Source: Mytilus edulis
Lineage: Eukaryota
Assembly (NCBI RefSeq): GCF_963676685.1
Contig: NC_092355.1
Span: 18,786,001 to 18,850,000, forward strand
Length of the DNA: 64,000 nt
Reading direction: 5' to 3'
The notes under the pieces were generated by a model. The model was not told the DNA's origin. It searched no databases and worked only from the letters and a program-made list of their open reading frames with translations. Shown here in pieces: positions 16,101 to 61,525 of the stretch. Made by a program: the position numbers and the translations under genes. Position 1 is the stretch's first letter; each line of letters opens with the position of its first letter.

Positions 16101-16881
16101 TATCTCACTACTGTACACACGTAAGAGTGGTGATCTTTGAAACAAATAGCATAGAGTCTATATCAAACAACAATGATCAAGTGTTTGAACTTTATCAAAC
16201 GACATACATACTTTAAATTACAACGCACTCCATCTTGCCAGTCGGGTCAAAAATAATAAAGCAACTACCTACTATTGTTTCAATACAAAAGATGTTTTGT
16301 TCTCAAGTACTTGATAATTATGTTGTAAAAATATGGACGAGTTTTAAGATGAACGAACGTTCGTACAGCATCACGCAACAATTTTTGTTAAAAAAATAAT
16401 CCGTTATTCATACAGACGTGGTCTTTTAAATAGTTTTGTAACATTATATAAGGCTTTATTTATTCAAAAGAAGACTCATGTATATTATAATTATTCTTTT
16501 TAAGTTGAACAAACAATGGCTGTATTATGTTGATATCATTAATATTTTAAAGTTTGAAATCTACATTCGAATCAGATTAGAAATTCATATTCTTGACACC
16601 TCTATTTCAGACAGAACTTAAAATGCAGAGAATATATTTCTAAATATGTAAATATTGATACTGTGGAGTATATTAATATGAATTATGTCAATCAGCAACA
16701 CTTTGATAGAAAGACTTAGAACACCTAAGTACCAACGTAACCCGGCTGATCCAGTCGTTTTCTTCCGACTCACTGCCGATCGCTACTGTATGCCAGTAAT
16801 AGGCGCAAAATTAGGGAAGAACGTCGATTTGTAAAAAAAAAATTCAGAAATTTGAAATTTTCTAAAGTGGATGAAGATACA

Positions 16882-37946: not shown

Positions 37947-40826
37947 TTAATCTATTGTTTTAGACGTCGTTTTTTCCTTTGTTTCCTGCAGCAATTCAAT
38001 AGGTTTTACTGAGGCTTTGCTTGATTTGATAAGTATAACAACATTCACAATATTGATAATTGAAGATGAAAAAAACATTGCACTTGCAAATGCTGTCAGG
38101 TAGTATCCGACTGAAATGTTCTCTTTGTCCGGGTATTGATTAGCTGGATTGTCAAATAGAACTGACAGAATGGACTTGTAATGTCCCTCGTAGTAGACCA
38201 AACAAGAAACAAGAAGTCCTCCTGAAATAGTTACAATATTTTAAGCATGACACGTTACCATTATACATAATTATGTTTCAAAATATTATTGTTATTATAT
38301 TGCAGACAGTTGTACTCTTGCGTCTTGCGTCGGTAAAAAAGTGTGCTCCTATGTTATAGCAATACGATGAATACACCAGAAATATTCAGTGATTAAAAAG
38401 TTATATCATTTTTTAAGGGAAATTCCGCAAAGTAAAACGTGATAAAATACTAAATAAAAAACTATGACAGCACTTATGATTGCCGTAACTTGAAAACAAA
38501 TAGTGCGTAACTTTTTTTATTGTACCACTTGGTATGTCCGTAACTTTAGTATGAAATACTTTAAAGGAAAGGTTATCATTTTTTTCCGCGTCAACAAACG
38601 CGCTTCATTTTATAAAATTATAAAGATCTTGGTTTACGATCTATTGTACTGGTGGAAGACAAAAATAGGGAACAATTTAAAACAAATTGACGGTAAATCC
38701 GTAACACTTGGGGCTGCTTTTTTTTTTTTTTTTTTTTTTTAATAGCTGTGCTCTTTTTTCTCTTGGTTAGTTTCAGTCATTTCGTTATCAGTCTAGGTAA
38801 TACTTAAGGGCTTTAATAGTGTTTATTGTCCTTTAATTGTTGAATGAAATTGTCAATTTTACAATTTTGAAGAAAAGTTTCCCACATTCGAAATTAAAGT
38901 TACGGACAGTCTGCTTAGCTTTGACTAATAAGTTACGGACATCTAATGCATTTTTTAAAAGTTGGTCTTGCGCTTGAGTGAACTCAAAATTAATAACAAA
39001 TTGATGGTGATACTAAGATTTTCCTTATTCAATAATCCGATCAATATTCAAATAGAGCATGATAAACGTCGCAAAAAGTAGATAGTGTATCAATTATGTA
39101 TCAACGAGTTAAGAGTCCGCCATCTTGGTTACCCACAGTCGTTTAAGCACAGTGTAATACATATATAAAAGAGTACTTTTTATTTTTTTAAAATAGAAAT
39201 GAGAAAAACTATCTTCCGACAAATATGCCACACCAAGGGCATTTTCTATCGGTTTATTTATGGAGTATATTTATCTGTAAACGTATTTACTGTATATAGC
39301 TAGCTAGTCGCAAAGTATTTATACATATAATATGTTTTTCAATGTTTTAACATTAGTTTTAAATATCTGACTAAAAAGATAATTTAATTCTTATTTTTTA
39401 TATCTCTTTTTTACCTGCACATAACGAAATAACCGATGATCCTATCCTCCAGGCATTCAAAACAGCTGGTTTTCTGTTAAAAACTGGCACTAGACTGCCT
39501 ACCAAAAGGACAATAAAGGACAATAGTCCCAATCCAACAGCAGTCAGAATAAGTAGCCGTGGTATGAGTCGCCATGAATCTGCAAATAAAGATAAAATTA
39601 ATTGTTCTATTATAAAGTTTCTAAATCTAAAGTCGATCAACTCGTTAGATATTAGATAAGTATGCAAAGGTCACAAAAAATTTCAGATTCATTGTTTTGT
39701 AAATGAAGGTATTAAAGCAGTTGGATTCATATGCACTTCAGCATGTGATAGCAAATGCATCGAATAGTACAATCTCTGGGAATAATAACCAGTCTGTTCT
39801 TTTGAATATTTTGTCATTATATAAGCTCAATTGATAAATCTCTTTCCAATGCAAATCTTCATCATAGTCATTTATTCATTATTTATTCTCATTAAATCTG
39901 TTTTGTCAACTGAAAGGTTATTACTTTGTTGTTGTTGTTTGCAAAACGCTCAATGGCATAGCTTTTGCGAGAGTAAAGGGATTTTGTTGATGTTTTAAAA
40001 AGTTCAGGTGGTACATAACAATGTAGGGAGATAATCCCGTGTAAATCAGCCGAACAGTTTAATAACGTTCTTTTGTTAAGATAATATCAAGCTTTCCAAA
40101 GTTCAAAATTTGATGTTTGTCAAACTGCTCTATATTCGAATTCAATGACAATCCATCTTTCCGATAATCTTTTAATTTTTTTTTTAAATGATCAAAGAAA
40201 ATATTTTGTAAAAATCTTTTGGAAATTACACGAGCCAAATAAATCTTAGTTCAGGGTGTTTTTGAAAACACCATTTATCTGTATTTTACAGTCTTTTGTA
40301 GAAGAAACGGGCGTCTGGCGCAAATATAAAATGTCAATCCTGATATATATGATGTGTTTGTTTTAATGTAAATACATTGATATCCTCCTTCTAACCATGT
40401 ACTACACGATTGATTTTTTTTAACACAGTAACTGCAATCCGGGTTTCTATGATGAGTTTATTTAAACAACTATATCGTTTGGCTGGGTTCAGATTTAAAA
40501 TTATTTTTTTTTACTCAAAACAATGTCGTTTGAATTGAACAAAGTACATCTAGTAGAACATGTTTAAATATCTCACCGTCTCTAAACTCAGTTGGTATGA
40601 ATACTTTCGTGTACACTTGATCACCGGTTTTCCATATATCATAACTGGTCCACAAGTTTTGGTAGGCATACATATATAAAATATATCCGAATCCATAGTC
40701 TATTGCTTCATTGTAAAAAGTCCACTTAACTGACTTAGCGAGTGTGCCACTAACGACAGATATAGCTATTAATATCAAAGCGGCTGATGTTAACAAAAGT
40801 ATATGCGGTTGCGACAAACATCCCAT
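37947..40826 (-). CDS. Claudin/PMP22-superfamily-like 4-TM protein, paralog B (intact, 229 aa). Exons 40826-40577, 39579-39415, 38221-37947
   Basis: Canonical GT-AG sites, both introns phase 1, 250+165+275=690 nt open frame. Four hydrophobic segments, W...AYQNLWTSYD in loop 1, PRLLIL entering TM2, GYYLTA entering TM4. Confidence 0.88.
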
Positions 40827-40889
40827 GTTGAATAATGTGAATATTTTTTACAGTCACACGTGGTTACTATAAAAAAAAATCAAAAATGC

Positions 40890-41594
40890 TTCTCTGAATA
40901 TGAATTGATATCAGTAGACTTGAATTTAACTAAAACTTTAAAGAAATCACTAAGCAGATAACTTTTTGAATCATTAAAACTTAATCCTAGCACCTATACT
41001 ACATCTTCTAGTAAGTATATGTCTACATTAATAGCACCCTTATTTTTGTCGCAAATTTTTCAATTTCTTTACCTTTTATATACAAACGACTCATCAGGTA
41101 TCAACCTAATCTTCAAGAGAATGATAAGTTATAACGAATCAAATGTCGCTCATCATGAAGACACCGATATGCTGACCATAGTATAACAGTTACTGAGGAC
41201 AATATGTTCGTTAACCTGATGAAAGGGTTTAAGTTCACTGTTTCTACTAATCTTCGATCAATTGACCAAAGGATATAGAATGATTAAACACGATTACCCT
41301 TGACATGAAATGAACATGCTATGTGCTGAAAATAGAGGAATTGACAAAATGTCATCGATCGTCTAAGCATTAGCATTTCCCCATTATCTTTATTATATTG
41401 GATGTATTATCTAAAATAAATTGAAAAATTTGCGACAAAAATAAGATTGCTATTAATGTAGACATATACTTACTAGAAGATGTAGTATAGGTGCTAGTAT
41501 TAAGTTTTAATGATTCAAAAAGCTATCTGCTTAGTGATTTCTTTAAAGTTTTAGTTAAATTCAAGTCTACTGATATCAATTCATATTCAGAGAA
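40890..41594. repeat. Long inverted repeat: 177-bp arms (40890-41066 and 41418-41594), 351-bp spacer
   Basis: Arms are reverse complements with only a few mismatches. No target duplication seen. Confidence 0.95.
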
Positions 41595-43306
41595 CCTGAG
41601 CAGTCATCTTTGAAATTCCTTCTAATACCGAGGACGGAGTAGTACAAATTTGTCAAAGACTTGAATGATTACACATTAGGGCCATTTTCCAGATAACTTT
41701 CAATCTTGACTTAAATGCAAAATATCACTGTCAAGCATGTGCACTTTTAGGTTCTTACGCATATTTTAGCTTATTTGTAAACAGGTCATCAAATACATAA
41801 AGACATTGATAATTCCTTTTATCAAAATATATTTTCTCTGGTAGATAAAGACAATATATTAAAACAAAATATCTTGTTTGAATTCCTTATACAACACAAA
41901 AGAGATTACCAGAGACGAAAGAGTGTTGTAAACCCTACATATATTTTAGTGAACTGCAAAATTTTACAGCTTTAACGAAATACTTTTGAGCCAATTAAAT
42001 TTTCATGGTAAAAAAGTTACATAATCTATTTTTTAGATCTATAACATGAAATCAAACAGACCTTTAGATTTCCAATCGCACGAGGTCGCAACCAATATAT
42101 ATTAATGTTTAAGTTTATATCAGGTTCGACAGTTTTTCGGAGGTCATCTCGATATATAATTAGATGACGTCTAGACTAAAGTACAAACACAATTTTGATA
42201 TATTTTATCCAATACATGCTTTGTTAACAGTTCATTTCAGACTTATTGCAATTTGGATATACTATTTAGTATGTTATAAAAGTAAATATTCGAATATGAC
42301 AATTTTAGTAAAATTGTTGAACATGAATTTGACATCTAGTACCCCATTAATGAAATAAAGAAGTTCCAGTAAATATGAATGCAACAAAAAAAATACAAAA
42401 AACTCAACCTGAATTTAAAATACGATCTCAACCTGAATTGTTCCTGGTAAAAGCACGGGTTGCTTACATTTCTATACAGAAACAAAGAAAAATCATTCCT
42501 CAACAACATATTTATTGATATAGAATAATAAGACAGTAGAAATACAAACAAACATGCATTATATCTTTCATCGAGATACCAGTGTTTAGATAAGAGAGCG
42601 ATCGCATGAATTCTAATAATAGCACTTTCACATTTCTTCACTCGTCCAAAGTGAAATAGTAGCAATTGATTGTGATTGATTGATTTGTGTTTAACGACAC
42701 TTTCAACATGATGTAAAAGTTCGTGCCATTCAGTTTTATTGGAAGAGGAAGCAGGAGTGCCCGTCGGTAGTAAAACTGACAATTTTAGGCAATACATATT
42801 GAAGTCGAGTGCATCTGCTCCGTGCAGCGTTAAGAGTTGACAGGCTAGTCATAAACTGCTTCGACTTCTTAGGTAATTCGGGAAATAGTAAAATATATAT
42901 GTTTATATATAAAAGATTTCACTATTTAAATCATTTAAGAACCTTATGATTATATAAAAGTGACGGAACAGACATTTACTAATGTTTATCTCACGTAAAG
43001 TCATTAAAAATGTACCAATCTAGATAAAAAAAAAAAAAAAACACAATATCGAATGCACTCCAAACAGAGAGATCACGGATGTAACGAACGGCTACGTCGA
43101 CAGATCAAAAGTTCAAGTTTACTGGTATGAATGCTTAGTCCGCCATTCGAATTCATACTGAAAGATTATGTCCAGATGAGTACTATCGGTAAACATAAAG
43201 ACCAGACGACTATTCTAAAAATAGTTAAACTAGTCTAATTAAATCGTTAAATGAAATCATGTGGTTACATCTGATAGTTTTGTTACAATAACAATCTCCT
43301 CTTATA

Positions 43307-45151
43307 TTATGAGACCTCTTCAGGGCCTTGTTCTGAAGGTTTTACAATCATATTTCCAGCTTTGATAAGTATCGCAGCATTTGCGATGTTAACGATGGAA
43401 GAAATAAAGTAAAATGTGCATGCAATGGCTGCAATGTAGTATCCGGTAGATATGTTATCTTTTTCTGGGTATCCAGAACCCGCTTGGTCGAAATTTACTG
43501 CCAAAATCGACTGGTAGTGTTCTGTGAAGTAATGTAAATGTGAAGGCTAAGATTGTACCTGAAAATATTTAAATTTCATTATATTTTCCCATTTCAATAA
43601 TTGACTATACTTAACGTATCGACTTAATGTTTTAATGACACTCATATTTGAAAATATTCATACAAACCGTAATTGTTCATTTATAATACAAAATAAATGA
43701 CAACAAAAACATTTCAGAATTATGTCACAATCTCTAGATATCTTATTCGATATTCTAACTTTTGCTCATTGATAAATGCTTATTCTGTAAAAAGTTACAT
43801 GACAAGAATTAATGTTATAGGGACACCGAAGATAAACAAAGAATAGATATGCATATCCATGAAGCAAAGACAAACTAATAACGCCAGTAAAAAAAACCCG
43901 ACAAAACAAAAAAAAACCAATATCTATAAACAAGATTCAAAGGAAAAACAAAATTTTATTACAATTGATTAACACTAAACCCATTTTGAGGTGGGAAAAG
44001 AGGTCTTTAGTTGCAAACGTTGTATCAAATGATATTAGTATATGAATGGAAATATAGTTATGCAATTTTTTTTTTATTCAAATAGTGTATATTCGTCATA
44101 ATCGGTTAATATAGGACGAAGAGGATGAATCTCTGGAGCTAAATGAAAATAATGTTAATGTTTACCTGCACAAACAGATAGGACTGACGATGTTATCCTA
44201 CAGCCATTCAGAACAATGGACCTCTTCTTCAAGAATGGTACCAGACTTCCGGTTAAAAGTATGCATAACGACACTGTTCCTATTCCTAGGGTGGAAAGTA
44301 TCAGTAGTCTTGGTAGTAGCCTCCATAAATCTGTAAAAATGTATATTTTGAATTGACTATCAATAAATATTAATCCATTTATTGGAGTTTTAAACACATG
44401 CACTGATGTCATCTTTATGTATTGATAGCGCTTCTTAAATTGCATCATAATTAATTTAAAAAAAACTTATTTTGTGTAAAAGTAATAATAGAAAGAGATA
44501 GGTTAACTTTCAAGCTCTAATTTTCCATGAATTCGAATATGAAGATTAATGAATCATATACATGACAAAATTGAAACCGTGCACACATATTTCATCCTGA
44601 TGATTAGCATCTATACTTTCATTTATATTTTAATGTTGCAACAATATTTTTTTATTTTTATTATTTAGATCCTAATCATGTTGTTGTCTATTCGTTACAT
44701 GTGTTTAATCATTTGATTATGCAATTTGATTAGGGATTTTCCGTTTTGAATTTTCCTCGGAGTTTTTGTGATATTACTTTTTAATTGGTTCGTTATGATA
44801 TTTCTTTTTCTTTTTTTCACAACAGTTTAAAATGAATGTTAATTAAGCTTAAAACTTTTAAAATGACAATAAGAATGTACAACACAGTATATGCTTTTTT
44901 TTATCCTTACCGTTCCTGATTGGTTTGAAAGTCTGCATGTGTTCTTGGTCACTATTTCCAGACCATGCATCGTAACTAGTCCAAATAGTCTGATAAGCAT
45001 CCAAGTAATAACTGGTTCCATAGTCTATAGGGTTATCGTAAACATTCCATTTAACTTCTTTGGAAAGGGAAGCACCAGCAAGGCACATGGCTATCAGTAT
45101 TAAAACAGACGATACCATTAGAAGAGTAGTTGATAAAGATAAACACTTCAT
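43307..45151 (-). pseudogene. Claudin-like paralog C. Exons 45151-44911, 44330-44166, 43558-43307, with a +1 frameshift at ~43536-43538
   Basis: Exons 1-2 are open and homologous to D (exon 1 54/80 aa identical). Exon 3 reads TTC ACA TTT ACA instead of TTC ACA TTA CAT TAC, giving a stop at 43457-43455 before TM4. Removing one T restores LHYFTEHYQSILAVNFD...YPEKDNISTGYY (218 aa). Confidence 0.75.
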
Positions 45152-45251
45152 GACTTTTGATTACTTCGGATCTTATTTCGAACATTCAATGCAACATACA
45201 TACGATGAAGTTGGTATAGATTCGGCTATTATGTATACAAGTACGTCTTAA

Positions 45252-45815
45252 GGAGGCTCGCGGGTATAAAAGTTTCAGAAAAAAATTAAACATTTATTTT
45301 TCATTACAAATTTTATTTATTAACTTTAGTAGTTGTTACTTTATCATATGGTACAAAAATCTTTTCAAAAGGTCAATCCATGTTGGACCCAGGTGACTTT
45401 TAAAATGTAGTCATCATTGAAAAAGCTCCAAATTATCTCCCTTTGGTGCAAAAATGCAATTTTTTGGCATTAAAATTGAAATATCTTTTTTTAACTCATC
45501 AGTGACCTATATGTTTATTGTTGTTTTCGAATAAGCTGTTCATCAACTAAAAAATTGTAAAATTTAAGCGATTTCTGTAATTTAGTTCTTTTTTTATTTC
45601 TATATTACCTCTATTTCTCCTATTAGTTCAACAGAAAAAAAGGACAATAAGAAAAAAGTATGCTTCTTTCGATGGCAGATTGTGAGCGTAAATAAACCGT
45701 GACCCCATTTTTTTTATTTCATTTTTTCAATTAAGTATAAGATAAGTTCATTTATAGAAGAATATAAAAAAATCCTATATTAAATAAAAAAATTGATTTA
45801 GTCCCGCGAGCCCCC
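45252..45815. mobile_element. MITE with TTAA target duplication and GG...CC termini (Kolobok-like)
   Basis: TTAA-GGAGGCTCGCGGGTATAAA ... TTTAGTCCCGCGAGCCCCC-TTAA. Confidence 0.85.
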
Positions 45816-46633
45816 TTAAATGCTAGGGGAAAAAATGTATAAAAACTTTGACAATATTTCCAATGAATATCTGTCGATGGTAAATACCACAATATATCAG
45901 GATTTTTTTTCTTTTACAAATAAATTGCAGATAATCTAGTTGGTAAAAATTTACCAAAAAAGTCAATAACCGAAAAATCTGTCCTTAAAACAGAAATATT
46001 GCCATAATAGTAAAACTTATTTATACAAAATAAAGAACGTGCAAACAAATATACTAATACACATGGATTTTCATCAAAGAATCCTATTGGTCTACAGAAT
46101 AAATTTCTTCAATGTTAAATTTCTAAAAACAGTCCAGTAAGATTATCAACAACCCTTTTAAGGTGAAACCTCAGTGACAAGTCGATTATTTAGGGTAAAC
46201 CTCTGTTTGTGTTTATAACATGTGTAAGACTAAGGTTAATTTACATAAGGCTATGAAATGATTAAATACAGAAGTTCAAGCTACGTTTGTAATCTAAAAT
46301 GTATGTGAAATTGCGAAATTTCAAACAGATACAGTTTTCCCAATATTTGAAAAATGATAAATAACCGATATCAAATACACATACTTTCATAAGATTAACC
46401 ATCATGCTGGTAAATCATATGTGCTTCTTTCAATGAAGCCAAAGACAAATTGTGTCGAAATTTGAATATATTTAGTTTATTGAGTATGAAATATAATCTA
46501 TACAAAGTAGTATAAAATTGAAAATAGAAATGGGGAATGTGCCAAAAAGGCAACAACCCGACCAAAGAAATTTTTTTAGAAAATGACAATGACAGGACTA
46601 GATATGGATTTTCGAGCATGTCATATGATATAT

Positions 46634-46794
46634 GGATTCCTACACTGCAACAAGTGTATTACGATATTTTTCCACTCATGACAGTTACATTTTAATAATT
46701 AAAGCGCTAGGCTTGCTGAGCTTTATAAATAATTAAAATTTAACTGGTGAGAGTGGAGAAGTATCGTAATACACGAGTTACAGTGGTTGAATCT
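46634..46794. repeat. Degenerate long hairpin (~70-bp arms) within a repeat element
   Basis: CACTGCAACAAGTGTATTACGATATTTTTCCACTC mirrored by GAGTGGAGAAGTATCGTAATACACGAGTTACAGTG, with a GC-rich centre. Confidence 0.7.
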
Positions 46795-47212
46795 GTTTCT
46801 CTTATTATTTTTATCCTTCCTTTTCAAAGATTTGATGTGACGTCATTAGGCATGGTCGCCTTTTTCGTGACGTCACAATAAAACAATTTAGAAGAAAACA
46901 AGAAAATTTAACGTCACAATTAAATTTCAACCGATCATTTGCCGAGTACAGATTTTTCACTAGTGAGGAGAAATCTTTTTCTCGCACCGGTCAGGAAATG
47001 TGAAAATAAAACAAAAAATAAAGAAATGAATTTAACAAACAAAGTTTTTTTGCCAAATGAAACATATATCTAGTTATCCTTAATCAGATATTCTATGTGG
47101 TAAACCTATTTCTTTTTCTATTTTTACTTAATATTATGTAAATCATAATTCAAAGATAAATGAATCCCTGGTTAAAACAGTCTTAAACGAAGAAACAAAT
47201 ATTTTGATATGA

Positions 47213-47256
47213 GCATCACTGATGAGTCTTATGTAGACGAAACGCGAGTCTGGCGT
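47213..47256 (+). ncRNA. Minimal type I hammerhead ribozyme motif (Penelope-like element / retrozyme associated)
   Basis: Stem I GCATCA (47213-18) / TGGCGT (47251-56, one mismatch). Core CTGATGA (47219-25). Stem II GTCT-tatgt-AGAC. GAAA (47239-42). Minimal stem III AC-GCGA-GT. Predicted cleavage after GTC at 47250. Confidence 0.8.
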
Positions 47257-47511
47257 ACTAAATTATAATCCTGGTACCTTTGATAACTTTTTTTTATTGT
47301 ATCAATATATTTAATTGCCCTACAGAGAACGTAACAACATATCTCTTCACATGCATCGTTTTGGTTAATATATTAATGGATATAATTTTCTTAATAGTAT
47401 AGTATACACTTTAACTGCATGGACTATTGTTTTTCTTAATCAGCCATCTATCGTTAAAGCTATCTACATTTAATGCGTAAATTGATTGCTCAATATATAA
47501 ATTTCTGTAAT

Positions 47512-48498
47512 GCGGGGTTCACACATTGCCGATTATTGCTCCCGTTTGAGATCAGAGAGCGATAAGACACGAAAGGTGAAAAAGTCGGATTACTATCCTC
47601 CATTATCTGGAATGTCCTATCATTGTCTGAACGCAGCCATTAAAGTTCTTAACAGATTCCTACGGGTCGGGAAAGGTTCGAATAGTTCGGCGAAGCACCC
47701 CGACAGTTAGATGCGTCCCGTAACATTCGTGGAAACTCAGCCGATTTTGTCTAGTAGGATTACAAGCGTGACTATGTTATGACAGATTCTGCTGTATCGG
47801 ATCAAAATCCCGACAATGTTCTGTATATTCTGGACACTGTCTTGTGGAACGGGAATGATCTGGAGAATTTTTTATTGCTGTTTTTCTGCCGATTGAGTAC
47901 GTATTGAATTCAGATCTTGTCGATTGCGACCAGTTTTTGCCGAAACCGTTCCGGAACAGTCCCGTTATTAATACGAAATTCGTCAATGATACCCACATCA
48001 GAGTCCCGACAATTACAGAATACAATACGACTGAGACCAGACAAAGCCGTTTGCAATGCGATAGAGCGGACCGTGATAGGATTGCATTCCGATAGTACCT
48101 GATCATCCTATATATGCCGACAGTTTTCAAACGGATCTTCCGTCAACGTCGGTTCACTGTCCGGTCACTGTCTGATCTCTGTCGGATTACATTCGGTAGA
48201 ATTGGGACGCAGTCGTGACAGACTCGGTCAAGTTTTACCATGCAAAAGATACAAATTGGATTAGAATCGGATCGAGAACGGGATTCTCGGGACAAATTCG
48301 CTTGGAAACGGTTGAATATCGACGCTTTCTGAACAATATCTGATTGTTGTCGTGATTTAATGTTTATTTTACAAGTTTTAATTAAAGTTTGAATTTCCAT
48401 CCACGATTCACAGGATATTGATCAGACTTTTGACAAATTTTAATCGGGAATTGCCCTGTCAAGGACGGCAGTAAAAATCGTGAAAGTGTGACCCCAGC
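47512..48498. mobile_element. ~1-kb GC-richer non-autonomous DNA transposon
   Basis: Imperfect TIRs GCGGGGTTCACACATT.. / ..AAAGTGTGACCCCAGC. Sharp GC and CpG increase against the flanks. No coherent protein. Confidence 0.6.
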
Positions 48499-49845
48499 TC
48501 AAAATGCTTGAACAAATTTTCTTATAACTGAAAACGTTGTATACGTTTAACTAGTTATGTACACTTCCAGATAATAGTATGTATACGTCTTACAAATACA
48601 TACGAATGGACGTCAATTTAGACAACAAAATTAATATTTTGGAGATATTATAATGCTTAATAGTAAACAAAATTCTAATACCAAGTATTAAGTTCTCTAT
48701 CGCCTATGGTCTAGACAAGTAAGACAACAGATAAAAAGAGGATATTAAAACTCAGTCGAAAATTAAAGAATAAGCAACACAAATCAAACCCCTTAAAAAT
48801 AGAGGATGATCACAAGTACTTACAAACGGTTAGCAGTGCCTTCTTAACATGTTATACCTGTCGTTTTACTTATATGTATATAAAAAAGACGATGTGGTAG
48901 GATTTCCAATGAGACAACTCTCCACAAGAGACCAAATGACAAAGAAATTAACAACTATAGGTCACCTTACGTTGATAAACATATTAAAGTGATAAAGTAT
49001 ATCGTTCGACTCTTAAAAAACTATAAGACATCACCAAATTAATACACTATCTATTATGTCATTTTTCTAACCCCGAAACTTAACAATGTGAGTCGAGTAA
49101 AAATTCTGAAATCAGAACGTTTTTCATGACAAACGATAGACAAGAACGTTACTGGTATTAATAATACAGATGTTGATAAATTAAAAAAAAAAACCACAAA
49201 GAACAACACATAAAACGGACACTAAATCAGCATGAACCACTTTTCTTTAAAACTAGTAGTGATATGATGTGTTCATGAAGTGTGAACAAATCGTACTCCA
49301 CATGTTGCACTCGTCGTGCTGTTCAAGTAAAAACAAGACCGGTGATACGTTAGACTCTATTGATACGTTCAAGTTAAAGAAGGCAGGATTGTGGTTACGA
49401 CAATTCAGATATTCCGTAATGGTGTACGTAACATTGTTGAAGTAGTGCCAGTCAAGGTCGTTAAAAACTTCCATCATCATGTAATTTTGATAATATTGAA
49501 ATTATTGAACCAATGTATGCATTTATACTAAACTAAGTACTGTCTGCCCTTTTTTATTATTCTATAATGAAACTTTAATGTATTATCGACAAATATCATT
49601 GTACTCAGTAATTGTAGATCGGTAGCGGGTTAGCTTTTGAGTTTGTTACCGAATATCGGATCATGACATTGATTATCTATCTACACAGAATACGTGGAGC
49701 TCTTGACAGATAAGTGAAGTGATAGAGACTTAAACATAGTTCTGGACTGTCCATATGTTCTCATTTGTTAATTTAAATGTTCCTTAAAAGTTGTTAATTA
49801 ATTTGTTGTATTACATTTGTTCTTAAAGAATTATTTATTACTTAA

Positions 49846-50195
49846 TAATTACATTAGATGTATGTCATTATAATACGTTATTTTGATTGGCTAACTAGCA
49901 ATCTCGTGATATTCCTATTACACAATACAACTTTTCATTCATGATGACACGAGGTCCCACAATAAACAGCACAGGTTAATGAAAAGAAAACTTGATAAAA
50001 GGTGTGTTTTCATGATCCTATAGGTAAAAATGTAATTATAAGTATTGAATGCTTTTTTTTTTTGTAACTTTATAGGGTTGTAAAAGCGTTGACCGTGCGC
50101 ACATTTTTAGTATGAAGCGCTTCATACAAAATGTACATCGGTAAACGCTTTTACACCCCAATAAATTAACAAAAAAGAGCATTCAATTCTTAATT
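49846..50195 (+). mobile_element. ~350-bp repeat with a long 3' hairpin, copy 1
   Basis: Starts TAATTACATTAGATGTATG. The 3' half folds GTATTGAATGC...AAAAGCGTTGACCG / CGGTAAACGCTTTT...GCATTCAATTC. Second copy at 56643-57015. Confidence 0.8.
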
Positions 50196-51033
50196 ACTTT
50201 CCAGGGCACGTTTATTTACATTCTTTCATCACGGTATTCCCCTCACACTTGCGCTTTGTGGTGGCCAAGTTTTGACGAGAGGTCTTGGTGTTAAGGTCAC
50301 TGCATATCGGAAGGGAAAGTATCGATAAATTAATGTACGGGGGACAATTATAGTAGTATATTTGTGAAGATTTTGATAACATAAAAGATTTTCTTTTGGA
50401 AGAAAGTTCAAGTATACTTGTTTCATAGTTACACTTAGTCATTCAAGAAAATAAAACATATTCAACTTTCTTTTTCGAATTGAAGTTTCATGATGGCAAC
50501 ACAAACAACGCACAACATCTTACCATACACATTAGTTTCACAATTACTTGTTCTAATAACAAATTCGTAAAACTATATTATATTTTGAGCATATTTACTG
50601 CATAAGGTTCTTTGTAGAAAATATTTACCTTTTGTAGAAGCTAAAACGGGAAAAGACGATGTTTACCTAATTAACAAATTGATGTTGAAATTTACCTTTT
50701 AATGTGTTGTATTGCTGTTGTAAAATGCTATGGTGATAGCAATCGATGCAAAGAAAAATAGTGTTTAACAGAAAAAGATCATATTTTTCGATCTCCAAAA
50801 TACGCCCTAATTGTTGATGAATTTTGTTAGCAATGTCAGACGCACAGAAAGATAATTGTACTAAAAATTATTTCATAAACTAATTTCCGAAATCTGATCG
50901 ATTTTATTAATGTGCATGTAGTTTACCAAAAAAATTCACTATCCGCAATAAAAGTATAACTGTTGTCTTTTTTTTTTTATTAAAATGCTTACAAAATAAA
51001 CTAATCCCGTGTAATACAATCATTAAATGGAAA

Positions 51034-54000
51034 TCATGACCTTGCATCCGGTAGCTCTGTTATTGTTATATTGTCATGTGCCTTCTTTGATGTCCCTTGG
51101 TGTTCATCTATCGTAGGTTTCACAATCGCAGTACCAGTTTTTATAAGTATCACTGCATTTGCGATATTAACACTGGCAGAAATGAAATAAAATGTGCATG
51201 CAATCGCTGCAATGTAGAATCCTGTAGATTTGTTATCTTTATCTGGGTACCCTGAATTAACATCGTCAAAAATATTCGTCAAAATCGACTGATAATGCTC
51301 ATCGAAATATTTTAGAGTGTAGACCAAGAGGCTGCCTGAAATTATATGACATGATATATTTTCACACATTTGTATATAAATGTACTTAAAAATATAATTT
51401 TAACTCAGTGTTCTCTTATTATGCTGTTGTACTAATATCTGTTCCTTTATTTACAATATCACTTTTATTGTACTACTTTAAAGAATAAATATGATAAGAA
51501 TGCCAAGTTTCACTGCCGTTTAATACCTCAATTTGATCAAACTTGGATAGATGCGAAGTTAGGAATTACTGCAATCAAACCTTTTTTGTACTTTTTATTT
51601 ATACAAATGCAGAATATAACATGCTTTAAAATACGTTACGAAACAAGTAGGTCAAATATTTCAAAAGGATAATCAAAGCTTATAAATCGAGGAAATGACA
51701 AATGAGATTACCTTAATCATTAAGTGCCAGTCTGCCTAAGAATCAGGCAATGGTGAAAACATGATAAAAAAAACCACCCTATTTGACATTGATTTCAGTT
51801 AATAATATGTAGTTATGCACAAAAATTACATTCATTTCCATTTTCTGTTCTGGTAATAGAAGATACAATTTGGTTGAAATGCACTAGAAATTTACAAAAA
51901 AAAAGGAGATAACTCTGTAATTTGCTATCATTTTAACCAATTTTCAACCAAGTTATTTGATATTACCAGACACAGACAAACAAAAGACCAATTATCTTTA
52001 ACTCAGGATGATGGTTTGTATTAAATAGCATGATTAGCTCGGTGGGTTTTTTCTAATCATGTTTTAATTTTTACCTAAATTGCCCTATTCTTACAAAGAC
52101 TGGCACTTAATTGTGAGTATCTGCCAGTAGATAATGTTGTAGTTTTACTTGATATATGATTGTCCGTTAAGAAAACCGTTAAAAAATTACTATATATACA
52201 TTGTTATGTAATATATTCAACATGGCGTTCTACAACTAAATGTATAAAATACATCAGAAAACTGAAATGTTATACATATCATAAGCCAATCATATTACGG
52301 TTAAACCTAATTAAACTTAATGTTAAATCTATGTTAACAGTTATCAAAGGTACCAGACTTATAATTTGATAAGCAAATAACAATTTCAAAGTGTAAACAC
52401 AAAAATAGAAAAGAAATTATGTTTGAAGAAAATTATTGTATACCTGCGCATACAGATATGACTGACGATGCTATCCGACCGCCATTCAGAATACATGGCT
52501 TTTTCTTCAAAATTGGCACCAGACTTGCCAGTAAGAGGACACATATGGACAATGTACCTAATCCGAGGGTTGAAAGTATAAGGAGTCTTGGCAACAATCT
52601 CCATGAATCTGAAAAAAAAACCATACATTGAATTAACTGCAAAAACGCATTTTATTTATTTAAAATGGAAAATGGAAAGAGACAACAACCCGACCAAAGA
52701 GCGACAAACAGCCGAAAGCCACCAACAGGCCTTCCATACAAAGGGAAAATCCCGCACCTAGAGGCGTGCTTCAGTTTGGCCCTAAACAAAAATTTGTACT
52801 AGTTCAGTGATAATAGACGTCATATTTAACTCTGCAATATATAAAAGTGCTAAAATTAAAAATCATACAAGACTAACAAAGGGCGGCGGGTTCAAACATG
52901 TTAAAAAAATACATTATTGTTGAATGAAGTACTTATATGAGAATTTACATTACGACGCTTTTTCAAGATCAGACGGATGTGATTTTATTTCTACCCCTAT
53001 CATAAGTGTTATGCATATCCAAATTTATAGAGGAATGCGAAAAATATCAAAAAGGAACATTCAAACTCATAAGTCGAAAACAAACTAATTGGTTAAAAAA
53101 GGAAAAAAGGAAAAGATCAAAAGAAAAACAACAGTACACAAAATATATGTATATGTTTTTGTTAAATCATTAATAAAAGAGAAATAGTGAAATATTATAT
53201 CGCTTTCAGTAGCCAGTATGGTTCAATTTTTGTCAAAATAAGCTAAAAAAACATATATGATGAATTATTCACTTAAGCTTCCAAGTGAATCACTCGACCT
53301 AATTGAATCTATTTTCACGTTATCTTCAATTCAATCCCTAGAGATTGATTACGCATGAAGTATGCGTGTTCAATTGTAAAAAGGAAAAACATGTCAACAT
53401 TGAAAGTAAAACAAAGATAAATCATTTGATTGACTGATTCGATTCAGAAAAACTCATTCTTATCCAGGTAAAAACGATAATTAAATCACTTTTTTTTTTT
53501 TAAATCTAACAGACATAGAAAATCATAATTACCCGAGGTCGCTATCTATTTATATATATATATGACTGTATGTTTCTATCGTTTTATGTGACCTTCGTCA
53601 GTTTTCGGAGGTCATCATTATAGGTAATCAGATGGCGTCTAGACAAAAATACACACGAAATTCTGATCTATATAATCAGGTATATACATTGATAACTGAT
53701 TATATAAGACTTTTTGTTATTTGGATATGTGTTTTGGTATGTTATAAATCAAATATGAGAATAGGTGAACATGACTTTGACAGCTAGGAGTTGTTGCCTC
53801 ATAGTCCTATATTTGCACATAAGTATAAAAAAATAATGGATGGATAGAAATTCTTTCCTGTAAAATTATCTTGCAGAGAAGATTTCCAAAACAGTTTACT
53901 TTAAAAAAAATAAGTTTGTAGCATTTTTTCCAATTCTATGCAAAAATGCAAGGAGAGTAATGCAGAAGTATACATTCCATGTATATGCTTGCTTTAATTA

Positions 54001-54301
54001 CATCTTGAAATGATAATAAAAGTATGTTTTGTTTAATGTTGTCCGAATTTTCGTTCTTACCGTCTTTGATTGGTTTGAAAACCTGCATGTGTGTTGGGTC
54101 TGAGCTCCCAGTCCATGCATCGTAACTGGTCCATAATGTCTGGTAAGCATACAAGTACCAAGGAGTCCCATAGTCTAATTCATAGTTGTAAAAATTCCAT
54201 TTCACGGATTTTGCAAGAGACGCACCGGCAAGAGACAAAGCTATCAGTATTGAAACAGATGAAATCAACAGCAGGGTAGATGGTAATGATAAACGCTTCA
54301 T
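51034..54301 (-). CDS. Claudin/PMP22-superfamily-like 4-TM protein, paralog D (intact, 235 aa). Exons 54301-54061, 52608-52444, 51335-51034
   Basis: GT-AG sites at the same codon positions as in the paralogs. 241+165+302=708 nt open frame. Motifs KW..Y, AYQTLWTSYD, DSWRLLPRLLIL, YPDKDNKSTGFY, IVKP. Confidence 0.88.
51720..52110. mobile_element. MITE-like element in intron 2 of gene D
   Basis: TTAAGTGCCAGTCT...AAGAAT mirrored by ATTCTT...AGACTGGCACTTAA, plus inner inverted AAAACATGAT / ATCATGTTTT. Confidence 0.75.
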
Positions 54302-56642
54302 GCCCTTTGATTACGTTTTATCCGATTCCAATATAGATTTTTTTAGATACAAATATAAAGCAACCAATCAACAATAAAGTTGTAACAAATATATGTACGT
54401 GTTTCCTCTTTCATAAACTAACTCAACATATAAAATCGGAAAAAAATAATTCCTATAGATATTTTCGAATTAATAATTCTTATAGATTTAGTCCTGTTGG
54501 AATTGCTGCACAGTTGCCGAATATATTTATATGTAGAATGTAAAAGTTAGGTTTGCACAGTATAACATTTAATCGAAATATCTTCCCATCAAAAAGGAAA
54601 AACTTTGTTATCCATGTGATTAAACTGCTCACATCCTCTTTTATATATACAACACTTAACGTGCGAAAAAAATGTTAATATATATAGATTAACATCAGCG
54701 AATCACACGGATTGGCATTATAAATTAATGCCAGATTTGCTAACTAAGACAATTCCAGTGATATTAATCCCACCTTCTTAATGTGGACCCTAGCTAACAA
54801 ATTGATAAATGTGAACACCTTTATTTCCGTAAATCTTAGGTCAATTTACATAGGGATATATATTGATAAAAAATACTGCGATCAAAGTTGCTTTTTAACA
54901 CTAAAATGTATGAGAAAATTGTGAATGATAAATATACCCGAGACTTGGTTTTCAAATTAGTTAAATATAGTAATTTATTACGTTCAAATTAATTTATGAG
55001 CATGTGTCGTTTTTGTTTAATGAATAGAAAAAAAACAGGTATTTCAGACAGAAGCTCATGAAACAATAACAACAACGAATATATAAAAGTCAACATAAAA
55101 TACGGTTTCTAAGACGGATAATTGGAAAAATCTCTTTATTTGTTTAAGCTTTAATAAAATTGAACGGAAAATACCAAAGGAACATTTAAAACTCATAAGT
55201 CGAGGAAACGTTTTCAATTCATGACAAAAGACAAAAAACACCCCGACGAAACGACAAGTTTTTACAAATAAATCAAGAGAAAATAACTAAGCTTGTATGA
55301 GTATAAAATTACAACTACCTTGCTCAGCAGAAAAATACTCCTACAATGTTGGTCAATGCTTTAGTTAGAAAGTTACACTTGTGGTGGGATCTTACAAGCC
55401 ATACATTTTGTTCTAAGTTCAATGTCTTCCGACTGAAATTTTGACCAGTCAGTCATTCATTGCTTGGTTGATTGATTGGTAACAGCTATATTTGTCTATA
55501 TGCCTAGCATTTTTGATGAGTTTGTTTTTACATTAAACGGCAAATTAAAAATGTATATTCACGATGGAATAAAAAAATAAAAAATAATAGATGAATTCTT
55601 TTTAGCAAGTTGACCGGGATGAACATTTGGGACTGCTTCATGAAAATGAGGAAGATATGGATACTTTTTATAGGTATATAAATATTGGGGGATGGACTAC
55701 TAGAATTAAATCGACATAATACAACATAATATATAACAACGCATAAAGTATGAAGATAAGATAAAGGTATTTAAATGTATTGATAATGTAGATAAGCTTT
55801 CCACATTATGACATTGATTACATTTTGTATATATTACAATGTAATTTTGACGTTTGAGGTCTTTGATACACACTGTAACAGCTTATGTGAATTTGATTTC
55901 GATCTGACTTTCCAAAATACTTCTGTCTGTATTTTATGCGTAGTCCGTTTGCATTTTTGTACTAAGCATCAACCACACAGGTTTTTGCAATGAGTCTAAT
56001 TCTTCAATTTTTATCTTGTTAGATTTTCAATTAACTCATCAGAATGAAAAATGATATGGCAATTAAAAGCTTAAAAATCAGATTATTACATTTTATTGAC
56101 AAAAGTTGTTGCACAACATTTTTTCAATCATCTATTTAAATAAATCCAGGCTACTAAAATATAAATTATACGAGGTAGGTTTATTAACATCTTACATATA
56201 TTTATCAATTTGATAAAGTTACGTTCATTAAAACACGCCGGTTCATAAGATGTGAGTTTGATCCGTGTTTTAATATCTATCATAATTATACAGAATCACA
56301 GTGATATTTCATGCAATGTCGATTTCTTGGACGTCATTGTGCTGCACAAATTTGTTTAAACATTAAACATACGTTTTATGGTAGTGTGAACATAATAATT
56401 ATGATATATTTAGATTGATCAAATATTTTAGAATTTTGTGACTTGCCACTCCATAAATTTTAAATGTATGTTGAAAAAAAGATATTATGCAAGTCTTCCA
56501 TGATACAAATATTATTATATTAGTAATAAACTATAATGTGCTTAATTCTTTCTGCACCGTTAGGATTTTCCCATCAACTATCTGGTTTTAACTGGGATCA
56601 AATGATAAAAAATCGTGTATTAGATTTTTAATTGTATATACG

Positions 56643-57015
56643 TAATTACATTAGATGTATGTTTCATTATAATACGTTATTCTGATTGGCTAACTGCACA
56701 TCTCGCGTTATTCCTTAATCAATTGCATTACACAATAAAATTTATTATTCATGATGACTCGAGGTCCTACACTCAAGTGCACAGGTAAATTATATAAAAA
56801 CTTAATAAAAATCGTGATTTCATGAGCCTAGCTACAAAATGTAATTATAAGTATTGAATGCTTCTTTTTGTAACTTCATAGGGTTGTAAAAGCGTTGACC
56901 GTGTACACATTTTTAGAATGAAGCGCGTTCGCGTTCGCGCCTCATACAACATGTACTTCGGTCAACGCTTTTACACCCCAATGAAGTTACAAAACGAAGC
57001 ATTCAATTCTTAATT
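56643..57015 (+). mobile_element. ~370-bp repeat with a long 3' hairpin, copy 2
   Basis: Same family and orientation as 49846-50195. Confidence 0.8.
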
Positions 57016-57597
57016 GTTTTCAACATAAAATGTACTCATCCCTCCAAAATAACCGATTATCATTTCGGGATAAGAAAATAAGGGACCTCAATGAACCGTG
57101 AGTCATTTTGAAATAACAAAATATCAGACAAAAAGGAATATAGGAGCATCCGATTTTAATGCAAGGCTACCATCGGTTTCATCTCAAATAGAGTAAGCTT
57201 TAAAATAATCAACAATAAGGTATATAATAGGGTTTTATATAAATATATTATTTACAACATTGCTGCTATCAATGAGTGCTATTTTATGATGTGTTCTTCT
57301 GTACTCAATCGGCTTAACTTGGTCGAATTCGAAAATTAAGCTGCTTTTTTTCGAAACCATTTTCCTTTGGTACACAATAAAAAAAATCATCAAAGATACC
57401 AATCTAAAATTTGTAACACCTCGTCAAATATTTTTTGCCGAGTGACGGAAATCCTATTTCGTAAATAAAAATACAGTTGTACGTAAGTTTTTCAAATTTA
57501 TTTTTACTTCTTGTTAATCTTAATCTGGACAGAAATTGCACTGTTCTTTTCAGGATCTGTTCTGTCAACATCTTCCTCAGTTTCCGCCGGAAGTTCT

Positions 57598-60500
57598 TTA
57601 ATTGGTTTGACAATTGATTTTCCATTTTTTTATGTGGATCACTACATTAACAATGTTGACGATCGTTGAAATAAAGAAAAGTACACAAGCAGTTGCTGCC
57701 ATAAAAAATCCAGTCGATAAATTGTCTTCGTCAGGGTAAAATGACTTCGGATCGTAGAAAACCGGCGCTAACATCAGTTTGTATTTGTTTTTGTAATAGT
57801 TCAAAGTATATCCCAATATTGACCCTGAAATACAAAACAAAAAATGAATATCAATTTAGTTAAGTAACTATGTAACCTGTAAACCCTTTTCCCCTAACTT
57901 TCCTCTATGCGTTCACAACATAATTAAGTTTACAATAGAAAAGTACTAGTAACAATTTAATTTCTTTGTTAAAAGAATTCAAGTGCATGCAATAAGATTA
58001 TAATACGCATTGACTTTTGGTTTTGTAAAATTGTTTACTGGCTTTCGACCATTTGTCAGTTACAAGGAGTATTGTTACGTCGAAACTTTGACTATGTCTG
58101 TATGCCTTTTGGTAGTTGTTTATGGGGTGGGGTATCCATCTAGTTAGTAAAGATCATTTAACTCATTTTTGATAGTTTGTTATTATGTAATTCTTTTACA
58201 CTAATGTCATAGAGAAGCGTTTAACGCTGAAAATTATCTTCAATCCTGTCAAATTATGCATGCATGTCTGTCTTAAGTCTGCCTGTGTTCAAGTGTCAGT
58301 TGTTTTACATTATATTTCAGCTGCTCATTAATCAGTCGCTGTTTTTCCCTGTCTGAATTTCGTTTTCATTTTTTTTATGCATGGGACTTTTACAGCTTGC
58401 TGTGTTGTATGTAGTATGCTCATTATTATAGATACAAATGTCTTGAATGAAAATATCATATGATAAAATACAATACAATATTCTATTTTAAAAACACTCT
58501 GTTGCATTTACATGTGAAACACGAGGTAAACACATACAAAATACAATCACATACGATCTTAGAAAGCAATAAAACAACTCTAAAATATACCAACTATTGC
58601 TCCTGAAGGCCGTATACGGTGACCGATAGTTGATAACATCTACTGTCTATACTATCAATTAATTTTATAACATTTTTAAAAGCCTGCTGGCAATGTAATG
58701 AACAGCCTTAACTTAAAAAAAGTAATTCGTATTGGTAATTGCACTGTGCATCTAATAAAAATGATAACAAGAATGTGTCCGTAATACACGGATGCCCTCA
58801 ATCTAATTAAAAACCGATCTCTCATCGCTCCTGTTTCTGATATGTCGCGTGGGAGATCTAACGAAACCGGCTTTGAAGTCACATGTGAGTGAACTAAAAG
58901 TTATGATTTATAAAGATATGCAAATGAGTTGACGACCTATTAATAAGCCAATCAAAAAAGTTTATGAATTATTTGGACTGACGATTTCGTCGTAAATGAA
59001 ATGAGTTGCATCCCTTTGCCTTACGTTAAACTTCCAAGATCGTAGAAGACTCAATTTCATTGGTCGAAAAAGACACACCTACGAGGTCCCTCACATGTGA
59101 CCTCAAAGCGGGTTTCGTTAGATCTCCCACGCGACATATCAGAAACAGGAGCGATGAGAGATCGGTTTTTAATTAGATTGGGATGCCCCATCTGCACTAT
59201 CATTTTCTATGTTCAGTGGACCGTAAACATGGAATAAAAACTCTAGTTTGGCATTAAAATTAGAAATATCATATCAAAAGAAAAATGTGTACTAAGTTTC
59301 AAATTGATTGGACTTCAACTTCATCAAAAACTACCTCGACCAAAAAATTTAACCTGAAGTGGGACAGACGGACGAACGACGGACAAACGAACAAACGGAC
59401 GGACGGACGGACAAACGAATGAACGGACGGACGGACGGACAAACGAATGCACGGACGTACAACGAATGAATGGACGGACGAACGGATGCATAGACCAGAA
59501 AACATAATGCCTATAAATAGGGCATAAAACAGTTTCGAATGTTTTAGTGTTATCGAACGTTACCTGCAGCTAAGGAAAGTACGGAAGATGTGATTCTACA
59601 AGAATTCAAAACGAAACTTTTCTTTTTCAAATAGGGAACTAGACTGGCCGGTAGAAGAACAACCAAAGAAGTACACCCTATTCCAAGCGTTGCCATTATC
59701 AATATTCTCGGTAAGACTCGCCAGGAATCTGTAAAATATACATGGATTAAAATTCAACTTAATTGATAGTATTTATATTTACATTATACGGATAATCATA
59801 ATAAATGTGACTTATTAGACAATAATGTGGTATCGATGTTTCATAGCAAATACAAAATAGACATGTGAAGGTCAATATGTCATCTTGGACAAGACTTAGT
59901 TGTTTGTTTTAGTATCGTAACACGTAGTTATTAATAACTCGTTTGTAAAAGCTCAATTTTTCATCCCGAATTTTGAATAAGTTCCAGTCACCTAATAACT
60001 AGTTTTCTGTATTGTGTGTTGTTGACAACTGTTTGTCTGTTCGTCTTTCTGTTTATGAAGCATTTCGTCGTGTTCTTCTTTTGAAGTTTGCGCTTTCATT
60101 ATAATGAATAATAGCCTATCAAACATTGATGCGTGGCTATAGCTAGTATTTTGAAAGAACAATATAAATAAAAATGCTATTTCAGTACAACTGTTTCATA
60201 GAGAAACTTATATTTACATTCGTTGTTTTGTGTTTAAGTTTCGTTTCTGTTTTGTACACTGTTTTGGGGTCAGTTCTTTGTAGAAATTTTCTTGTGGAAT
60301 TTATCTTAAGAAATGTATCTTAGGAAATTTATCTTGGGAAATTTATCAGAATAACAGAGCTTGTTTTGTGGATACTCTTGATGTACATATATTATATATG
60401 TCTTTCAAAATATACTATTGACATCTTTAATTTATCAATAAAACGAATTGTCTTATATATGATGATGATTAATATAGAGTATGATGAATTCTAAAAAATT

Positions 60501-61525
60501 CAGTTACAGGTGAAATAACTTAATTGTTCCAATCTCGGGACTTTTCCTTCTTTGATCTGACACTTACTTGAATATTTGCGTCTTGATAACTAAAACTGCT
60601 GGTTATAGACTTAGTTTTTTACTAATCAACAACAACTATGAATAGTCTGGTGTATTACAATTTTTCTTGCTTCGTCAATATCATACAACTAACTTGGGGA
60701 AGCATGATAAAAAACACTATTTGGATTCAACAATAAAACATTAAACTGTCGGGTGTAAATACCAGGATGAATAAAACCTTGCACATTTTCGTAAACTATA
60801 CATTTCACATGTACTAGCTTTAGAAACAGGACGAAAAGAGAAGAGCGCGAAAAACGTGGACTGATGTTAGACAGGAATATATAACCTTATTTATACAAAT
60901 ATCACCAAAGATCGTTCAAGCTCTCTATTTGAAATTTTAAAATGATTTTATTTTTTCATATCCTGTTACACTATTCAACATTTATCAGTTTATATTTCTA
61001 TCAAAATACTATTTTTGAATTGAGAATGCAAATGAGGAGACAACAATCCAACCAAAGAGCAGATAACAGCCCAAGGCCTTCAGTAGGTCTTCAAAACAGC
61101 AAGATGAGAAATCGGTTTTTAATTAGATTGGAAAATCCCCAAAACAAGAGGCGGTCTTCAGCTGGTTCCTAAATGAACATGTGTTCTAGTTCAGTTAAAA
61201 TGGACGTCAGACTTAACTCCAACCCATATAAATGAACTAGAAGTAAAAAAATATACAAGACTACTTTACATATTTTACCTTTCTTGATGAGCTCATAAGC
61301 CTGAGCAGGATCGTTGGTGTTAACATATGCATCAAAACTAGTCCATAGATTCTGATAAGCATAAATACGAAACACAAGTCCATTTGGATCGCCATAGCTA
61401 GTTCCACTATTATATAAATTCCACTTAATTGATTTTGACAGCGATCCCCCAGATAATGAAATTGCCAAAATAATGCACCCTCCTGATGCAATAAGCAGTA
61501 TATTTGGAAGAGTGAAGAATTTCAT
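57598..61525 (-). CDS. Claudin/PMP22-superfamily-like 4-TM protein, paralog E (212 aa as read; 243 aa ending at 57504 if the A7 run is really A6). Exons 61525-61279, 59728-59564, 57824-57598
   Basis: Exon 2 is not in the ORF track but translates openly as DSWRVLPRILIMATLGIGCTSLVVLLPASLVPYLKKKSFVLNSCRITSSVLSLAA, with canonical splice sites. All four TM segments precede the tail frameshift. Confidence 0.82.
58767..59528 (-). mobile_element. Same HINE-like family in intron 2 of gene E, interrupted by a MITE
   Basis: AACAAGAATGTGTCC end at 58767, core, expanded (GACG/AACG)n tract at ~59366-59487, GGGCATAAAA end. Confidence 0.75.
58799..59180. mobile_element. MITE with ~90-bp terminal inverted repeats and a 9-bp target duplication (Mutator-like)
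   Basis: CAATCTAATTAAAAACCGATCTCTCATCGCTCC... mirrored by ...GGAGCGATGAGAGATCGGTTTTTAATTAGATTG. Flanks are GGATGCCCT and GGATGCCCC. Confidence 0.9.

Follow-up and report, generated by a model that had tools for sequence, protein, structure and literature searches.

A Mytilus tandem gene cluster encoding four-transmembrane proteins, a probable cysteine-free branch of the claudin fold superfamily

A 64,000-nucleotide stretch of the Mytilus edulis genome (hereafter the window; contig 12, NC_092355.1, 18.786-18.850 Mb) contains a tandem cluster of genes encoding proteins of approximately 210-240 amino acids with four transmembrane (TM) segments. The proteins of this Mytilus family are probably, at a likelihood of roughly 0.7, a divergent branch of the claudin/PMP22/MP20/TARP fold superfamily that lacks cysteines in the first extracellular loop (loop 1), with an outer face that would bind a fixed partner and a role that may lie in junctions or adhesion. 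The finding is a cysteine-free variant of a known superfamily and not a new system. An earlier note, made from the letters of this DNA, had put the cluster forward as an undescribed system, which was an overstatement for a divergent subfamily of the claudin-fold proteins.

Five related copies were identified in the window by a motif scan and by tblastn with the first gene model as the query (E values of 1e-10 to 1e-56), and the gene models were then rebuilt by reading the sequence. Genes B to E lie on the minus strand and copy A is inverted on the plus strand (Table 1). The introns of B to E are all GT-AG and of phase 1, in a three-exon plan with a middle exon of 165 nt and a first exon of 241, 247 or 250 nt. 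Exon 2 of gene B encodes TM2, the inner loop and the start of TM3. Hydropathy analysis gave four TM segments, with a large loop 1 (~50-55 amino acids) after TM1 and a short loop 2. The family motifs were found in the alignment, comprising K-W, YG, AYQ[NT][LI]WTS[YF]D, an arginine at the TM2 entry and G[FY][YF] before TM4. Cysteine is absent from loop 1 in all five window copies and in 30 of the 31 family rows. The translated C-termini end in TID, ARS or QTN (-KTID, -DARS, -CQTN) and not in the YV PDZ motif of claudins, and the tails of the orthologues are likewise without YV. The shared exon structure, the four TM segments, the loop of about 55 residues with its motifs, the missing cysteines and the missing PDZ motif had each been described in the earlier note, and each was confirmed; the cluster is a real tandem gene cluster and was correctly described.

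The structure was predicted for the M. edulis protein CAG2246429.1 (P0018), which is 99% identical to the gene B protein and differs from it by two amino acids. Database searches were run with this orthologue or with exon sequences, and the spliced models were used in local computation only. A first AlphaFold2 (AF2) model, built on a 15-sequence alignment, had confident helices and a poor loop 1, and its top Foldseek and VIA matches were all of the claudin fold, ranked as they were with the later model. The AF2 model built on a 46-row alignment, to which exon-level rows from the window and from the other copies in the genome had been added, had a pLDDT of 79.5 and a pTM of 0.77. Loop 1 in this model contains strands at residues 36-43, 49-56 and 61-64, with a bridge residue in loop 2. 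The best Foldseek match of the 46-row model was claudin-3 (E 2.2e-5, TMt 0.74), followed by claudin-4, -9, -19 and -15, and among the matches listed (ranks 1-50) all were claudins, TARPs, GSG1L or MP20. The VIA comparison returned Z scores of 17.1 for MP20, 17.0 for claudin-15, 16.6 for TARP gamma-7, 16.3 for a designed claudin fold, 14.1 for both LHFPL4 and Cav gamma-1, and 12.9 for DUOXA1. The predicted model has the elements of a claudin fold, namely a four-helix TM bundle and an extracellular beta-sheet drawn from loops 1 and 2, and the order of four hydrophobic segments with a large first and a short second loop would fit termini that lie inside.

At the level of sequence, the PF00822 (PMP22_Claudin) profile matched P0018 over residues 9-191 and profile positions 4-157 of 161, with an E value of 9.2e-5 and a score of 22.9 bits. 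In ESM features, P0018 lay near the claudin_2, PMP22, clarin and LHFPL clusters, at 0.90-0.93. The classical loop-1 signature of claudins is W-GLW-C-C, in which the two cysteines form a disulfide (PMC11275452). In the mussel proteins, a Tyr or Phe is present three residues after the conserved LW (NLWTS[YF]D). The PROSITE claudin pattern, which we take to be [GN]-L-W-x(2)-C, would permit NLW and would set this Tyr or Phe at the place of the first cysteine, which is a lead and not a test. Pfam searches of single exons returned nothing relevant and those of six full-length orthologues returned no match, and no match to PF13903 (Claudin_2), PF10242, PF07062 or PF25807 was found at E <=10 in whole-Pfam scans of the members. 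Scans of the mussel's own genome with PF00822 and PF13903 found other claudin-like genes and did not match the cluster at E <=1, and a scan of the same genome with the family profile gave no bridge to the canonical claudin-like genes. The earlier suggestion of a claudin-like fold is thus supported, by the predicted P0018 model with its Foldseek and VIA matches, by the ESM features and by the PF00822 match, although the latter is below the cut-off.

Several results weigh against the assignment to the claudin superfamily and the role proposed with it. The PF00822 score of 22.9 bits is below the gathering cut-off of 26.7, and the profile was sub-threshold in 5 of the 15 full-length members, with 10 of the 15 having no Pfam match of any kind. 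A sequence-profile search of the PDB was empty, and an hhalign comparison of the family profile with the alignment of a TMEM178-like Claudin_2 protein, encoded by the genome's own gene, gave a probability of 2.7%. Both cysteines of W-GLW-C-C were missing in 30 of the 31 family rows, in which the W and [NT][LI]W are present. Residues 61-80 of loop 1 were modelled at a pLDDT of only ~50, and it is conceivable that the hydrophobic segment at the N-terminus is a signal peptide that is cleaved off. Three RNA-seq runs (related species label) had no reads on the exons of B or on exon 3 of C and had reads on intronic repeats only; between 6 and 33% of each run was read, at >=90% identity, and zero reads does not show that the genes are silent. 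The matches of the protein searches included no spliced full-length product of a transcriptome assembly.

Some of these results would also suit an unrelated orphan family of four-TM proteins, whose resemblance to claudins reflects convergence or a structure-prediction artefact on a helical bundle. The absence of a Pfam match at the cut-off and the low hhalign probability are in its favour, as are the shallow alignment from a single genus and the ability of helical bundles to reach Z ~13 by chance. However, the top 13 VIA rows were all claudin-fold entries (Z 17.1-12.9), which stood 4-5 Z above unrelated bundles and were aligned over 160-179 residues that include the sheet; the unrelated helical bundles reached at most 12.2, most of them over shorter alignments. 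The Foldseek matches within ranks 1-50 were exclusively of the claudin superfamily, the PF00822 match (E 9e-5) is full-length, and the W ... [NT][LI]W spacing fits the claudin signature. An orphan origin is therefore considered very improbable.

The family was compared with the known members of the superfamily. The classical claudins (claudin-3, -4, -9, -15 and -19; PF00822) are alike in having four TM segments, a loop 1 of ~50 amino acids with a predicted beta-sheet, a short loop 2, the W ... [GN]LW spacing in loop 1 and an arginine at the TM2 entry, and gave VIA Z scores of 15.5-17. The mussel proteins differ from them in the cysteines, the PDZ end and the PF00822 score, share ~13-18% identity with them in structural alignments, have three exons and were seen only in Mytilus. 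The family does not belong to the classical claudins: neither the two cysteines nor the PDZ tail was found, and the Pfam threshold was not reached. The canonical claudin-superfamily genes of the same genome (for example, the TMEM178-like gene, L019) encode four-TM proteins that score above the cut-off with PF00822 or PF13903 and carry W ... GLF-x-x-C ... C, whereas the cluster is without those cysteines. Within the PMP22/EMP/MP20 branch, human MP20/LIM2 (PDB 9cbv) was the top VIA match (Z 17.1, root-mean-square deviation 3.1, 162/166 residues, 15% identity). This branch is alike in its small size, short tails and lack of a PDZ motif, and MP20 itself is an adhesion-type membrane protein. Unlike the mussel family, MP20 keeps its loop-1 cysteines.

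The TARP, Cav gamma, GSG1L and LHFPL proteins have the same fold (Z 14-16.6), and the mussel proteins could likewise bind a membrane partner. The mussel proteins have a shorter and simpler loop 1 than the TARPs, which keep the loop-1 disulfide, and they lack a long cytoplasmic tail bearing a PDZ ligand. An alternative explanation is that the mussel proteins serve a channel or receptor as auxiliary subunits, in the manner of TARPs, GSG1L, Cav gamma and LHFPL4/5, whose TM3/TM4 face and outer sheet would dock on a membrane partner and tune its trafficking or gating. This would be consistent with the scores of TARP gamma-7, -8 and -3, Cav gamma-1 and GARLH4/LHFPL4, which are as high as those of true claudins in VIA and also in Foldseek, with a conserved outer face suited to a fixed partner, and with tails that have no PDZ-binding YV end. 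However, MP20, claudin-15 and the TARP lie within 1 Z of each other, and the fold scores do not separate the subfamilies. Moreover, no partner gene is evident, the sole neighbour being an intronless rhodopsin-type G-protein-coupled receptor (GPCR), which is not a known partner class. We regard the auxiliary-subunit mode as possible but unlikely, and weakly favour a junction or adhesion mode over it.

The divergence of the loops was analysed in codon alignments of nine copies, using Nei-Gojobori distances per region. The mean amino-acid identity between paralogues was 0.52 in loop 1 and 0.45-0.52 in the TM segments. The nonsynonymous distance (dN) was 0.37 in the loops and 0.46 in the TM segments, and the median dN/dS (omega) was 0.22 and 0.31, respectively, with omega below 1 in every region; all omega values are rough, given the saturation of the synonymous distance (dS) between the subfamilies. 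For the close pairs B-L029, B-L028 and D-L031, dN was 0.04-0.12 in loop 1 and 0.23-0.25 in the TM segments. Relative to the orthologues of other species, loop 1 differed at 7.2% of sites and the other regions at 7-13%. Of 28 invariant columns, 15 are in the two outer loops and none is in TM1. Loop 1 is thus as conserved as the TM helices or more so, the loops are not diversifying, and the coding sequences are under purifying selection.

These results bear on the proposal in the earlier note of a fixed membrane scaffold with diversifying loops, that is, a surface family for the recognition of microbes or self, or for escape from toxins that use it as a receptor. Within loop 1, only two short inserts vary, in both length and sequence, at residues 39-53 (15 amino acids, B numbering; identity 0.37, omega 0.68) and residues 64-84 (identity 0.38, omega 0.34). 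The differences between gene C and its orthologues are mostly in loop 1 (8/51 and 12/50 sites), and the classical claudins are receptors for the C. perfringens enterotoxin, according to the titles of structure entries. Nevertheless, loop 1 as a whole is no less conserved than the TM segments among both paralogues and orthologues, its omega stays below 1, and the orthologues are 1:1 and stable between species. The C lineage, which has the excess in the loop, is frameshifted in this genome. Contigs from a second DNA sample of the same organism cover B and, on our reading of the codons, differ in exon 1 by three silent changes, a single replacement (T73A) and a pair of indels that compensate each other. 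The picture of diversifying loops was not upheld, since the loops have no excess of divergence over the TM segments, and a recognition role is considered quite improbable.

The relatives of the family were sought in protein collections. A profile of exon 1 searched against 1.84 billion representative proteins returned only 10 matches, and full-length protein searches returned 8 and 13. All named matches were uncharacterised proteins, and they came from M. edulis, M. galloprovincialis, M. coruscus or M. trossulus; the unnamed ones, from genomic or environmental contigs, were single exons that read on into the intron. By detectable sequence similarity in the protein collections searched, the family is restricted to Mytilus, in agreement with the lineage-specific origin that had been suggested. 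In a maximum-likelihood tree, each of the window genes B to E pairs with its own orthologue in other Mytilus, mostly with strong support (P0018 and P0035 for B; P0011 and P0006 for C; P0013 and P0012 for D; P0020 for E). The genes had therefore already been duplicated when the sampled Mytilus species diverged. A literature search for claudin and Mytilus found nothing on this family.

The junction or adhesion reading, to which we return here, starts from an old array that was formed through tandem and inverted duplications predating the divergence of the sampled Mytilus species, and some copies of which appear to be decaying in this genome (A and C in the window; L030 and L031 outside it). TM1 to TM4 are predicted to form a left-handed bundle, with a beta-sheet from loop 1 and a contribution from loop 2, as in claudins. 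The disulfide may be replaced by an aromatic-rich core, which in B would consist of W35, Y38, Y55, W59 and Y62. Both termini would be cytoplasmic, as suggested by an inner loop that is short and rich in K/R and by an N-x-S sequon that is conserved in most loop 2 sequences. The conserved outer face would bind a fixed partner, most likely an identical or related protein carried by the same cell or by an adjacent one, which would give a junction or adhesion role of the claudin/MP20 type.

Copies A, C and E each carry a defect that was overlooked by the earlier note. No exon-2 match was found for copy A in the window tblastn or the exon-wise genome searches, and only a degenerate remnant is present; copy A is a pseudogene or partial copy without a usable exon 2. 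In exon 3 of gene C, the reading frame changes inside TM3 owing to a surplus T at 43536-43538. The frameshift is probably real, because P0006, an independent gene model from M. edulis, leaves out precisely this segment and the M. trossulus orthologue P0011 is intact, and gene C is probably a pseudogene. In exon 3 of gene E, the A7 run at 57625-57631 holds one A too many and the tail ends early; the next frame remains readable for ~40 codons and matches the long tail of the M. coruscus orthologue P0020. The extra A reflects either an error of assembly in the homopolymer or a frameshift of very recent origin. Single-base changes in homopolymer length were seen in three copies, namely exon 3 of L031 (T10), E (A7) and C (T3), and for these an assembly error could be as possible as real decay.

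Table 1. Positions of the exons of the five family copies, numbered within the 64-kb window.
Feature	Exon 1	Exon 2	Exon 3	Strand	Details
Gene B	40826-40577	39579-39415	38221-37947	-	250/165/275 nt (exon 3 including stop), 229 aa
Gene C	45151-44911	44330-44166	43558-43307	-	241/165/252 nt, frameshifted
Gene D	54301-54061	52608-52444	51335-51034	-	241/165/302 nt (exon 3 including stop), 235 aa, intact
Gene E	61525-61279	59728-59564	57824-57598	-	247/165/227 nt, 212 aa
Copy A, exon 1	611-860			+	250 nt, TM1 and loop 1, B-type; open reading frame and GT donor read; 76% identical to B exon 1
Copy A, possible exon-2 remnant		1735-1769		+	DAWKLL..., stop after 11 codons
Copy A, exon 3			2109-2353	+	End of TM3, loop 2, TM4 and tail

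The window holds one part of a larger array on contig 12. Exon-wise searches of the whole 1.37-Gb genome identified 11 loci of this subfamily, ten of them at 18.75-18.92 Mb on contig 12 and one at 53.57 Mb. The 165-nt middle exon and the phase-1 introns are common to the 11 loci (A having the exon-2 remnant only). Seven loci read intact (B, D, E, L027, L028, L029 and L032) and four are broken: A and C as described above, L030 by a stop and a deletion, and L031 (contig 12, 18918100-18924200) by a frameshift at a T10 run. The case for function in the intact copies lies in the purifying selection and the conservation of the orthologues. Close by, on the plus strand of contig 12 (18.898-19.178 Mb), there is a second subfamily of greater divergence, with at least three and possibly eight loci (including L033-L035). 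Its exon 1 reads ...NPGVKWNEY..FYVYYFHTLWTSLDA, with the same phase-1 donor and a loop 1 without cysteine.

Three further features of the window were observed. An intronless open reading frame of 556 amino acids at 16852-18522 (+), between A and B, encodes a protein with a long third inner loop and a match to Pfam 7tm_1 (rhodopsin-family GPCR; E 6.7e-31). Between C and D, a sub-threshold match to Rfam Hammerhead_1 is present at 47213-47256 (+), scoring 23.9 bits where the gathering score is 34 (E 0.0025, 701 nt searched), and may belong to a repeat element; no Rfam match at the gathering score was found anywhere in the 64-kb window. The regions 40100-40500 and 42100-42700, in the B and C introns and spacer, had very high contig depth in a DNA run and the only RNA reads, and on account of this depth and these reads are taken as dispersed repeats that are transcribed somewhere in the genome.

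The analysis assigns a fold and a superfamily to Mytilus "uncharacterized proteins" that have no above-threshold domain annotation. A new recognition or immune system is not supported, and the outer loops, which are more conserved than any other part of these proteins, point toward a fixed partner or a junctional role. From the predicted model, the outer sheet of the claudin type can apparently do without its signature disulfide. A bolder and rather unlikely version is that of a mussel-restricted claudin-fold branch in which an aromatic core has taken the place of the near-universal loop-1 disulfide, the protein still serving in junctions or adhesion or as the dedicated partner of a mussel-specific surface protein. 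If the aromatic-core reading is true, the disulfide would be dispensable for the claudin fold, and the family would mark a lineage-specific cell-contact structure.

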